Source: Dimorphilus gyrociliatus
Lineage: Eukaryota > Animalia > Annelida
Length of the DNA: 64,000 bases
Direction: 5' to 3'
NCBI GenBank assembly: GCA_904063045.1
Contig: CAJFCJ010000007.1
Coordinates: 1 to 64,000, forward strand
A model generated the notes under the pieces. The model was not told where the DNA came from. It did not search any database and saw only the letters and a program-made list of their open reading frames with translations. Each line of letters begins with the position of its first letter. Position 1 is the first letter of the stretch. Positions 1-23,716 of the stretch are shown in pieces. Both the position numbers and the translations under genes were made by a program.

Positions 1-3000
1 TACAGAATTTCCTTACTTGTGAAAGAGATTTCTTGGAAGCACACACACTGGCAGCAATTCTTTTTTGAATTTTGACAATGATTTTTGGACAAACTTTCAT
101 GTCTCCCTTTCCTCTTCCATAAACAGCTCTTCTCACAGCAATCTTTTACCAGCTGGGCAGGCCAGTTTAAGAACTTTTGTTCACACGTAACTCCAGTCTT
201 GACATCTAATGCAGAAAAACAAAATAAACAAAATTCCAAACTTTGAATAATTAGAAAGTCATTAATCTTACTTGGTTTTGTTTGTTTTGTGTGTTGCTAA
301 AACTAGCATTATATTTTTAGTAACTTTTTCAAATAATAATTTGATAGATATACCTTTTTTACAGACATATGCAACTCTCAAGTATTTGAAAATTCCTGGG
401 CAAGATCTCCAAACACATTATTCTTTGCCAATACATTACATCTTCTCTTTCCATTACAGAATTTCCTTACTTGTGAAAGAGATTTCTTGGAAGCACACAC
501 ACTGGCAGCAATTCTTTTTGGAATTTTGACAATGATTTTTGTGGACAAACTTTCATGTCTCCCTTTCTCTTCCATAAACAGCTCTTCTCACAGCAATCTT
601 TCTACCAGCTGGGCAGGCCAGTTTAAGAACTTTGTGTTCACACGTAACTCCAGTCTTGACATCTAATGCAGAAAAACAAAATAAACAAAATTCCAAACTT
701 TTGAATAATTAGAAAGTCATTAATCTTACTTGGTTTTGGTTTTGGTTTTGGTGGTGTTGCTAAAACTGAGCATTATATTTTTTAGTAACTTTTTCAAATA
801 ATAATTTGATAGATATACCTTTTTTACAGACATATGCAACTCTCAAGTATTTGAAAATTCCTGGGCAAGGATCTCCAAACACATTATTCTTTGCCAATAC
901 ATTACATCTTCTCTTTCCATTACAGAATTTCCTTACTTGTGAAAGAGATTTCTTGGAAGCACACACACTGGCAGCAATTCTTTTTTGGAATTTTGACAAT
1001 GATTTTTGTGGACAAACTTTCATGTCTCCCTTTCCTCTTCCATAAACAGCTCTTCTCACAGCAATCTTTCTACCAGCTGGGCAGGCCAGTTTAAGAACTT
1101 TGTGTTCACACGTAACTCCAGTCTTGACATCTAATGCAGAAAAACAAAATAAACAAAATTCCAAACTTTTGAATAATTAGAAAGTCATTAATCTTACTTG
1201 GTTTTGGTTTTGGTTTTGGTGGTGTTGCTAAAACTGAGCATTATATTTTTTAGTAACTTTTTCAAATAATAATTTGATAGATATACCTTTTTTACAGACA
1301 TATGCAACTCTCAAGTATTTGAAAATTCCTGGGCAAGGATCTCCAAACACATTATTCTTTGCCAATACATTACATCTTCTCTTTCCATTACAGAATTTCC
1401 TTACTTGTGAAAGAGATTTCTTGGAAGCACACACACTGGCAGCAATTCTTTTTTGGAATTTTGACAATGATTTTTGTGGACAAACTTTCATGTCTCCCTT
1501 TCCTCTTCCATAAACAGCTCTTCTCACAGCAATCTTTCTACCAGCTGGGCAGGCCAGTTTAAGAACTTTGTGTTCACACGTAACTCCAGTCTTGACATCT
1601 AATGCAGAAAAACAAAATAAACAAAATTCCAAACTTTTGAATAATTAGAAAGTCATTAATCTTACTTGGTTTTGGTTTTGGTTTTGGTGGTGTTGCTAAA
1701 ACTGAGCATTATATTTTTTAGTAACTTTTTCAAATAATAATTTGATAGATATACCTTTTTTACAGACATATGCAACTCTCAAGTATTTGAAAATTCCTGG
1801 GCAAGGATCTCCAAACACATTATTCTTTGCCAATACATTACATCTTCTCTTTCCATTACAGAATTTCCTTACTTGTGAAAGAGATTTCTTGGAAGCACAC
1901 ACACTGGCAGCAATTCTTTTTTGGAATTTTGACAATGATTTTTGTGGACAAACTTTCATGTCTCCCTTTCCTCTTCCATAAACAGCTCTTCTCACAGCAA
2001 TCTTTCTACCAGCTGGGCAGGCCAGTTTAAGAACTTTGTGTTCACACGTAACTCCAGTCTTGACATCTAATGCAGAAAAACAAAATAAACAAAATTCCAA
2101 ACTTTTGAATAATTAGAAAGTCATTAATCTTACTTGGTTTTGGTTTTGGTTTTGGTGGTGTTGCTAAAACTGAGCATTATATTTTTTAGTAACTTTTTCA
2201 AATAATAATTTGATAGATATACCTTTTTTACAGACATATGCAACTCTCAAGTATTTGAAAATTCCTGGGCAAGGATCTCCAAACACATTATTCTTTGCCA
2301 ATACATTACATCTTCTCTTTCCATTACAGAATTTCCTTACTTGTGAAAGAGATTTCTTGGAAGCACACACACTGGCAGCAATTCTTTTTTGGAATTTTGA
2401 CAATGATTTTTGTGGACAAACTTTCATGTCTCCCTTTCCTCTTCCATAAACAGCTCTTCTCACAGCAATCTTTCTACCAGCTGGGCAGGCCAGTTTAAGA
2501 ACTTTGTGTTCACACGTAACTCCAGTCTTGACATCTAATGCAGAAAAACAAAATAAACAAAATTCCAAACTTTTGAATAATTAGAAAGTCATTAATCTTA
2601 CTTGGTTTTGGTTTTGGTTTTGGTGGTGTTGCTAAAACTGAGCATTATATTTTTTAGTAGCTTTTTCAAATAATAATTTGATAGATATACCTTTTTTACA
2701 GACATATGCAACTCTCAAGTATTTGAAAATTCCTGGGCAAGGATCTCCAAACACATTATTCTTTGCCAATACATTACATCTTCTCTTTCCATTACAGAAT
2801 TTCCTTACTTGTGAAAGAGATTTCTTGGAAGCACACACACTGGCAGCAATTCTTTTTTGGAATTTTGACAATGATTTTTGTGGACAAACTTTCATGTCTC
2901 CCTTTCCTCTTCCATAAACAGCTCTTCTCACAGCAATCTTTCTACCAGCTGGGCAGGCCAGTTTAAGAACTTTGTGTTCACACGTAACTCCAGTCTTGAC

Positions 3001-23716: not shown

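Follow-up and report, generated by a model that had tools for sequence, protein, structure and literature searches.

The window analysed here comprises the first 64,000 nucleotides of contig CAJFCJ010000007.1 (NCBI GenBank assembly GCA_904063045.1) of the annelid Dimorphilus gyrociliatus, read on the forward strand. Positions 1-23716 are occupied by one real, expressed and conserved minus-strand gene for a giant secreted protein, composed of three classes of lectin or lectin-like modules, three VWD-C8-TIL units and a recently amplified SUEL tail. All coding information over 1-23716 was found on the minus strand. The reading frame opens with the ATG at 23716 and stays free of stops as far as position 730, in the last intact repeat unit; it comprises 88 exons and 5,636 codons.

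Gene model and domain make-up

The gene model was constructed by splice-aware dynamic programming and corrected by hand using paralogous modules and the exon lengths of an ortholog. Introns have a median size of 59 nt (range 48-603 nt) and are bounded by GT-AG throughout, save one GC-AG intron (9250-9197). This 54-nt intron has the sole non-GT donor in the model; in the ortholog, the exon of the same length (134 nt) ends at a canonical GT. Most domain exons are phase 1-1. The short introns and the AT-rich sequence (window GC about 0.25-0.36) are consistent with a compact genome. The start codon at 23716 is the first Met downstream of an in-frame stop, and exon 1 encodes a signal peptide (typical, as judged by eye), which is the same peptide at the N-terminus of the ortholog. 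Because a signal peptide is present and no second long hydrophobic stretch was found in the 5,636 aa within the window, the product is non-membrane and secreted as far as the window extends. The features of the gene are given below in the order of transcription (X1 and X2 are two RNA sources; HMM, hidden Markov model; CTLD, C-type lectin domain; TRF, Tandem Repeats Finder).

23662..23716, minus strand: exon 1 with start codon and signal peptide; in RNA contigs, 23662 is spliced to 23587, and the 5' sequence extends ~22 nt beyond the ATG.
20104..23587, minus strand: N-terminal block SUEL1-PANx4-SUEL2-PANx4-SUEL3, one domain per phase-1 exon (Pfam; introns all RNA-confirmed by X1 and X2).
12457..20034, minus strand: PAN/C-type lectin block, PAN9-15 interleaved with CTLD1-8, each CTLD spread over 2-3 exons (Pfam Lectin_C and PAN_1; own HMMs).
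18201..18803, minus strand: longest intron, 603 nt (RNA contig depth and exon fit).
17813-18019, minus strand: 207-nt intron, one exon after the 603-nt intron (RNA contig loose end).
10731..12397, minus strand: EGF-like exon and VWD1-C8-TIL-TILa/EGF, with GDPH at 12195-12184 and CGLCG at 11747-11733 (Pfam, motif coordinates).
8583..10641, minus strand: two EGF_CA, EGF and VWD2-C8-TIL-TILa/EGF, with GDPH at 10119-10108 and CGICG at 9625-9611; includes the GC-AG intron (Pfam).
6431..8520, minus strand: EGF_CA, 51-nt Cys exon, EGF_CA, VWD3-C8-TIL, TILa/EGF and EGF_CA, with GDPH at 8089-8078 and CGMCG at 7559-7545 (Pfam).
5971..6382, minus strand: 51-nt micro-exon encoding a Pro/Glu linker, followed by SUEL4, a diverged older copy (Pfam SUEL_Lectin, 1.2e-21).
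730..5810, minus strand: eleven intact 468-bp repeat units (TRF, unit comparison).
1..729, minus strand: a further 1.6 repeat units with apparent frameshifts (comparison with the unit consensus).

Pfam scans were run exon by exon on coding open reading frame (ORF) pieces of at least 45 aa, and domains were counted with HMMs built on the gene's own copies. The latter gave 15 intact SUEL, 15 PAN, 8 CTLD and 3 VWD domains. The SUEL total rises to ~17 when one frameshifted and one partial copy in 1-729 are added, and EGF-type modules number ~10. Along the chain, the signal peptide is followed by [SUEL-PANx4] x2, SUEL, the PAN/CTLD block (7 PAN, 8 CTLD), EGF, [VWD-C8-TIL-EGF...] x3, the Pro/Glu linker, SUEL4 and the SUEL array. 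The initial annotation had described a single secreted polypeptide of ~5,500 aa or more with ~17 SUEL, ~15 PAN, ~8 C-type lectin, 3 VWD-C8-TIL and ~10 EGF modules, and had proposed a Pfam scan. The scan recovered each named domain class and, with the own HMMs, the same counts, and the single chain is borne out by the continuous 5,636-aa frame, the RNA-confirmed exons 1-20 and a collinear ortholog.

Per exon, SUEL_Lectin (PF02140) was matched with E values of 1e-17 to 1e-21. In the N-terminal block, the three SUEL_Lectin matches had E values of 4.5e-20, 4.6e-17 and 5.9e-20, and PAN_1 was found in 8 exons. The best values on exon pieces were 1.5e-12 for PAN_1, 7.5e-12 for Lectin_C and 8e-22 for VWD; Lectin_C scores are weaker because every CTLD is split over two or three exons. 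The array SUEL unit could be aligned to L-rhamnose-binding lectins of solved structure (2.1e-52 for 5H4S, 2.8e-30 for CSL3) and retains the YGR, DPC and KYL motifs. The eight-Cys fold and these motifs place the unit in the SUEL/rhamnose-binding lectin family, and it is predicted to bind sugar. Among the C-type lectin domains, CTLD1-4 carry EPN (codons 19300-19232, 17700-17626, 16383-16314 and 15469-15397, each split by an intron), accompanied by WID in two of the four. CTLD5-8 are without EPN.

Three complete VWD-C8-TIL(-TILa/EGF) units place the protein in the VWD-C8-TIL repeat superclass. The VWD1 segment was matched by VWD (2.8e-16 and 1.9e-10), C8 (1.3e-12), TIL (7.4e-11) and EGF_3. For the VWD2 segment, the matches were EGF_CA (5.4e-14 and 7.3e-11), VWD (8.1e-22), C8 (1.2e-9) and TIL (9.9e-10), and for the VWD3 segment EGF_3 (5e-12), EGF_CA (1.8e-10), VWD (4.1e-16), C8 (7.1e-9), TIL (5.7e-7) and a second EGF_3 (3.2e-12). 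All three VWD domains open with Cys-x3-GDPHY and hold CGxCG. The predicted cleavage motif GDPH lies at residues 2736, 3264 and 3806.

Transcription and conservation

RNA contigs were obtained from a coral-tank metatranscriptome run (X1, 95-99% identical) and from an unlabelled whole-animal run of the same species (X2, at least 99% identical), the contigs of which are spliced. X1 and X2 contigs were placed on 17790-23789 and cover the 5' third of the gene. Fourteen of the 15 spliced joints listed fall exactly at predicted GT-AG introns of exons 1-17. The fifteenth, present in X1 only and located in PAN2, has a 2-nt offset and non-canonical ends. Every intron of the N-terminal block (20104..23587) was confirmed by spliced X1 and X2 contigs. 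Splicing of the 603-nt intron was evident from a 1,199-nt X1 contig with zero depth over 18390-18789, which fits exons 18804-18898 and 18020-18200. Splicing of the 207-nt intron was recognised by the loose end of the X1 contig at 18020, which equals window positions 17783-17812 with 2 substitutions. The splice sites of exons 1-20 are RNA-confirmed in two studies; being short, the contigs show splicing and not a single full-length mRNA.

A gene boundary, repeat or dead exon hidden in the 603-nt intron was considered and rejected, as neither a repeat nor the remains of a domain were found in the intron, and spliced RNA spans it. Extra, deeper X2 contigs matched parts of two PAN exons (21384-21594 and 22540-22588) and continued into sequence outside the window. 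These probably derive from another PAN-rich gene, a paralog transcribed from a different place in the genome.

An ortholog was found using the PAN+CTLD ORF, which gave one 75%-identical Logan protein and its genomic contig SRR23372229_17755 (22,544 nt; loci L001 and L006). This contig is collinear with the gene from residue 6 to residue 4284. An independent model of the ortholog comprises 66 exons and 4,209 aa with no stop and the same signal peptide. Exon lengths are identical in 54 of 65 comparable exons, including the 134-nt exon (GC donor here, GT there). At 65.6% amino acid identity, 270 of 271 aligned cysteines are conserved, and domain counts are equal (three SUEL before the tail, 15 PAN, 8 CTLD, 3 VWD), as are the three GDPH and three CGxCG motifs. 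In both species, the upstream neighbour is a gene with a dsRNA-binding domain (dsrm; 24476-26568 of the window, minus strand, and 3782-3943 of L006), and the locus is therefore syntenic and orthologous. The ortholog contig runs past the last EGF and stops 46 nt inside the SUEL that comes next, a point at which a short-read assembly would be expected to break if repeats lay beyond.

Identity to the ortholog differs by region and amounts to 80-82% in VWD, 69-77% in C8/TIL/EGF, 50-72% in CTLD and 44-68% in PAN and SUEL. CTLD1-4 of the ortholog have EPN in two cases and QPN in two. Synonymous sites are saturated (pS 0.73), and the overall dN of 0.25 (0.16 for the VWD core) gives a dN/dS of at most about 0.1. 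For the near relative X1, 23 non-synonymous and 10 synonymous changes were counted, with 7 non-synonymous and 0 synonymous changes within 28 codons of PAN2 (22691-22773, codons 244-271). This pattern differs from the low dN/dS over the longer term; diversifying selection, gene conversion between PAN exons or a paralog could account for it.

Internal duplication, SUEL tail and charge

Four layers of internal tandem duplication were distinguished. In the first, SUEL-PANx4 is duplicated, with halves 43% identical in amino acid sequence. The second is a duplicated nine-exon PAN-CTLD-PAN-CTLD super-module (46% identity) with nearly matched exon lengths (157/89/178/118/284(281)/95/181/115/142). The third comprises the three VWD modules (30-40% identity), and the fourth is the recent 468-bp SUEL array, for which TRF gave 12.4 copies at 99% identity over 1-5790.

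Each repeat unit of the array consists of a 312-nt SUEL exon, a 59-nt intron, a 30-nt linker micro-exon and a 67-nt intron; for the micro-exon, an alternative 36-nt acceptor likewise keeps the frame. Among ten full units, the only difference is an intronic T/C single-nucleotide polymorphism common to two units five periods apart. The perfect identity of the copies may partly be a product of polishing. SUEL4 has 53% amino acid identity to the array unit, and its nucleotide similarity is only patchy.

Compared with the unit consensus, bases 1-570 show 16 single-base deletions and 0 substitutions. Because the differences are deletions without substitutions, this region is probably an unpolished long-read contig end rather than a decayed one, with assembly errors as the source of the frameshifts. 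The 3' end of the gene would therefore lie outside the window, and the true protein length, C-terminus and copy number beyond the present model. A stop at 555 was rejected as the true C-terminus, since the region departs from the repeat consensus by deletions alone.

An exact 27-mer of the array gave no match in a metagenome scan. Two marine metagenome contigs carry similar repeats. In the first (L009; ENA ERZ27314251, 625 nt), an exact 141-nt terminal overlap gives a 484-nt period, with a unit composed of a basic SUEL exon and a Pro/Lys-rich linker micro-exon. The second (L010; TARA SAMEA6027814, 656 nt) holds a SUEL-exon tandem repeat with a 457-nt period and 98% identity. Both are collapsed tandem SUEL arrays with Pro/Lys- or Pro-rich linkers and the same cassette design as the 468-bp array. 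As homogenised SUEL arrays occur in these two unrelated contigs, the array type is not peculiar to the present assembly.

The protein is basic throughout (isoelectric point (pI) 9.66, net charge +600, K 12.6%, R 6.6%), and likewise the ortholog (pI 9.58, net +396). In the SUEL tail, the charge reaches +26 per 114-aa unit, with a pI of 10.5 and 25% K+R. It resides in folded SUEL domains and in short PK linkers rather than in low-complexity KR repeats. Cys accounts for 6.5% of residues, S+T for 10.5% and P for 4.9%.

N-X-S/T sequons were counted on aa 1-4385 of the model (coding 5971-23716) and compared with shuffled sequences. They are ~10-fold depleted, with 3 in 4,366 residues vs 34.8 +/- 5.5 in shuffles (minimum 19). 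In the ortholog, 5 were found vs 31.3 expected. Against 0.7 per 1,000 aa here, an Acanthaster Sfp1-like protein (P0131, 1.9) and an amphioxus FCGBP-like protein (P0060, 1.6) are sequon-poor too, and a vertebrate FCGBP-like protein is not depleted. The depletion may reflect avoidance of recognition by the protein's own lectins.

Relatives and proposed function

For database comparison, a whole-library HMMER search was performed with the VWD2 exon, and the best 150 VWD matches were examined for architecture. These are FCGBP-like or zonadhesin-like with 42-49% identity, and nothing above 49% over full stretches was found in this search. Word-indexed searches with the array unit, its match P0159 and the PAN+CTLD ORF gave only P0159, P0161 and P0160. 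Five of the best 150 VWD matches also carry SUEL or CTLD:

Acanthaster Sfp1-like protein (P0131): five SUEL, three FA58C and three VWD.
Amphioxus FCGBP-like protein P0060 (KAI8485101.1, Branchiostoma belcheri): two SUEL, five CTLD, six VWD, EGF and an IgGFc_binding head.
Second amphioxus FCGBP-like protein: one CTLD and two VWD.
Scallop protein and mussel protein: SUEL and VWD combined.

PAN was present in none of the best 150 VWD matches, and a full-text literature search gave no paper with all four domain terms. A homogenised SUEL tail on a VWD core was found nowhere else in the searches; the two metagenome contigs span short homogenised SUEL-exon arrays. Judged by sequence, the gene belongs to the VWD-C8-TIL superclass and is neither FCGBP proper nor Sfp1.

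The sea-star protein Sfp1 is a cohesive scaffold of a temporary adhesive, and for Sfp1/Sfp2 auto-cleaved, disulfide-linked subunits have been reported and lectin-glycan cross-linking of footprints has been proposed (PMC9382459, PMC12817120). Like the present protein, Sfp1 is a giant secreted chain several thousand residues long with SUEL/D-Gal lectin, three VWD with C8/TIL, EGF, ~5-6% Cys, GDPH-type sites and few sequons. Unlike it, Sfp1 has discoidin (FA58C) and lacks PAN, C-type lectins and an amplified SUEL tail. No exon matched F5_F8_type_C (discoidin) in the Pfam scans, vs three such domains in the Sfp1-like P0131. P0131 is not an ortholog, as it ranks 131 among the VWD matches with 37% identity and has GDPH in two of its three VWDs.

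Mlig-ap1 is a flatworm cohesive protein of 5,407 aa with C-type lectin, VWD-C8-TIL, many EGF, high Cys and extreme Lys/Arg richness, and its function is blocked by polyanions such as heparin (PMC6410801). Compared by description and not by sequence, it shares CTLD, VWD-C8-TIL, EGF, high Cys and an overall cationic, Lys/Arg-rich composition with the present protein. It differs in carrying its charge in low-complexity KR repeats (pI above 14) and in having one CTLD, one VWD, no SUEL and no PAN.

FCGBP and zonadhesin are the closest VWD relatives (42-49%) and share repeated VWD-C8-TIL units opening with GDPH and the lack of a mucin PTS (Pro/Thr/Ser) region. FCGBP undergoes GDPH cleavage with disulfide retention and has a role in mucus cross-linking (PMC8267560, PMC10880436). 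It differs by its IgGFc_binding head and 13 VWD units vs 3 here; over half of the present protein is lectin and PAN. No exon piece matched IgGFc_binding (PF17517) in the Pfam scans; the domain is present in P0060. The uncharacterised, sequon-poor P0060 is the only database protein found that joins SUEL, C-type lectin, VWD-C8-TIL and EGF. In contrast to the present protein, it has an IgGFc_binding head and GDPH in one VWD, and is without PAN, SUEL array or CGxCG. Its VWD identity is 32%, and it represents a convergent or shuffled architecture and not an ortholog.

These comparisons bear on three statements of the initial annotation. The likeness to Sfp1, Mlig-ap1 and FCGBP is real and comprises the VWD-C8-TIL core, GDPH in 3 of 3 VWDs, lectins, high Cys and basic charge; the Sfp1-like P0131 is itself among the VWD matches. 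The term "lineage-specific" needs qualifying, as the full architecture is kept in a second species at 65.6% identity. The domain combination had been called unrecognised. Its SUEL, CTLD, VWD-C8-TIL and EGF part exists in the predicted P0060, and the addition of 15 PAN was found nowhere else.

The gene product probably works like its superclass relatives FCGBP and Sfp1. The gene, the splicing of its 5' third, its domains, its charge and its conservation are established here. By analogy with these relatives, we consider it slightly more probable than not that this secreted, disulfide-rich, polycationic multivalent lectin scaffold acts as a cohesive cross-linker of secreted adhesive or mucus. A role in adhesive or mucus cohesion is ranked first, an immune agglutinin second at a low probability, and a reproductive matrix third at a lower one. 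In the proposed mechanism, the three VWD-C8-TIL modules, each with CGxCG, would drive disulfide-linked assembly in the secretory pathway. Autocatalytic cleavage at each GDPH would divide the chain into four fragments, with disulfides keeping these together, as in FCGBP and Sfp1. In calcium-rich sea water, the lectin modules could then bind sugars on partner glycoproteins and surface films. The binding modules would comprise at least 16 rhamnose/galactose-type SUEL, four EPN-type and four non-canonical CTLDs, and 15 PAN/apple domains. Polyanions would be bound by the SUEL tail, which is rich in Lys/Arg (+26 per unit) and has PKPKPKP linkers, and together these contacts would give a cohesive network. 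The near-lack of N-glycosylation sequons would keep the protein's own lectins from binding it. A polymerising, cleavable core is supported by the retention of three GDPH and three CGxCG motifs in both species and by the VWD domains being the most conserved part (80-82%).

Several points weigh against a cohesive cross-linker. RNA support covers exons 1-20 only (17698-23716), and the RNA consists of whole-sample contigs that carry no site, sex or stage of expression. A literature search found no papers on adhesive or mucus proteins of this worm. We infer GDPH cleavage, sugar specificity and multimerisation from motifs alone. A membrane anchor or a cystine-knot dimerisation domain may be encoded in the C-terminus beyond the window. 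No Ser/Thr/Pro-rich mucin region occurs in the 5,636 aa, so that the protein is not a gel-forming mucin itself. Finally, the same domain set equally suits an immune agglutinin or an egg or cocoon matrix.

As a mucosal or humoral pattern-recognition agglutinin, the protein would bind microbial sugars (rhamnose- and mannose-rich walls) through its lectins, polymerise through its VWD core and trap and clump microbes on epidermis or gut in an FCGBP- or hemolectin-like manner, instead of attaching the animal to substrates. L-rhamnose, which SUEL-type lectins bind, is a bacterial sugar, and the array unit is similar to rhamnose-binding lectins of solved structure. Pattern recognition is typical of EPN-type CTLDs, the nearest VWD relatives are annotated as IgGFc-binding-protein-like or zonadhesin-like, and the polycationic tail would bind anionic bacterial surfaces too. 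The lectin and PAN modules evolve ~2x faster than the core (44-68% vs 80-82% identity), and changes such as those in X1 (23 non-synonymous vs 10 synonymous, with 7 non-synonymous ones clustered in PAN2) are common in recognition surfaces. However, fast-evolving binding modules are equally expected of adhesives and reproductive proteins, and nothing points to microbial induction or to expression in immune or gut cells. Such an agglutinin is compatible with a mucus-scaffold role and does not exclude it. We regard this reading as unlikely.

Somewhat less likely still is a reproductive or egg-envelope matrix, in which the protein would cross-link jelly glycans of cocoon jelly, an egg coat or a male copulatory adhesive, by analogy with zonadhesin and egg lectins. 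SUEL lectins were first discovered in eggs, hence the family name, and zonadhesin-like proteins are among the closest VWD matches. Females of D. gyrociliatus lay eggs in cocoons, and the copulatory apparatus of the dwarf males has adhesive glands (PMC9687449); both would suit such a matrix, as would the fast-evolving binding modules. On the other side, the MAM domains, mucin region and membrane anchor of zonadhesin were found in no exon in the window (Pfam scans), and the RNA sources (coral-tank metatranscriptome, whole-animal run) are silent on sex and stage.

It is very improbable that the model fuses several adjacent lectin genes, or that a collapsed or inflated repeat mimics the tail. In favour of such an artefact, RNA evidence is limited to 17698-23716, identical array copies can arise from short-read polishing, assembly errors occur at the window edge and the copy number is provisional. 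Against it, the 5,636 codons contain no stop, exon phases are all compatible and no internal Met with signal peptide occurs. The introns that separate the blocks measure 48-82 nt and are too short to accommodate a promoter or terminator. The independently assembled ortholog contig keeps the order from signal peptide to first tail SUEL and breaks exactly at the tail start, and homogenised SUEL-exon arrays recur, with periods of 484 and 457 nt, in two metagenome assemblies unrelated to this one.

Large lectin-bearing VWD-C8-TIL proteins are emerging as a shared cohesive component in sea stars, sea urchins, flatworms, limpets and vertebrate gut mucus, with a cross-linking mode that is still a proposal. 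No annelid member was found in a literature search. The present gene is an extreme and clean case: its ~40 binding modules belong to three classes of lectin or lectin-like domain, its positive charge is borne by a chain of folded beads in place of low-complexity repeats, and GDPH motifs and sequon depletion are conserved. If the proposed cohesive role in adhesion or mucus is true, it offers defined recombinant units (104-aa SUEL bead and linker) for testing cohesion based on lectin-glycan binding and charge. As a speculative extension, to which we give little weight, the glue or mucus could be a two-part system of this sequon-free, polycationic three-lectin scaffold and giant acidic, heavily glycosylated mucin-like proteins, set by lectin-glycan binding and charge condensation. 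The SUEL-PK array would then be an evolvable "valency dial", with its copy number changed by unequal crossing-over. Such a two-part system, if true, would represent an annelid adhesive principle that differs from cements based on 3,4-dihydroxyphenylalanine (DOPA) or phosphoserine, and would make the sea-star idea of lectin-glycan cross-linking readily testable. If the protein is only another mucus or immune lectin, the gene would be an ordinary, though well-documented, giant matrix gene.

Other genes were recognised in the remainder of the window. Five clustered single-exon genes on the minus strand at 38440-56496 encode rhodopsin-family G-protein-coupled receptors, with product lengths of 303-326 aa and Pfam 7tm_1 matches at E values of 1e-14 to 1e-20. 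M1 aminopeptidase exons (ERAP1_C, Peptidase_M1_N), a 409-aa flavin amine oxidase ORF and a PDZ-domain exon were found at 57822-63613 (minus strand) and 48937-49482 (plus strand).

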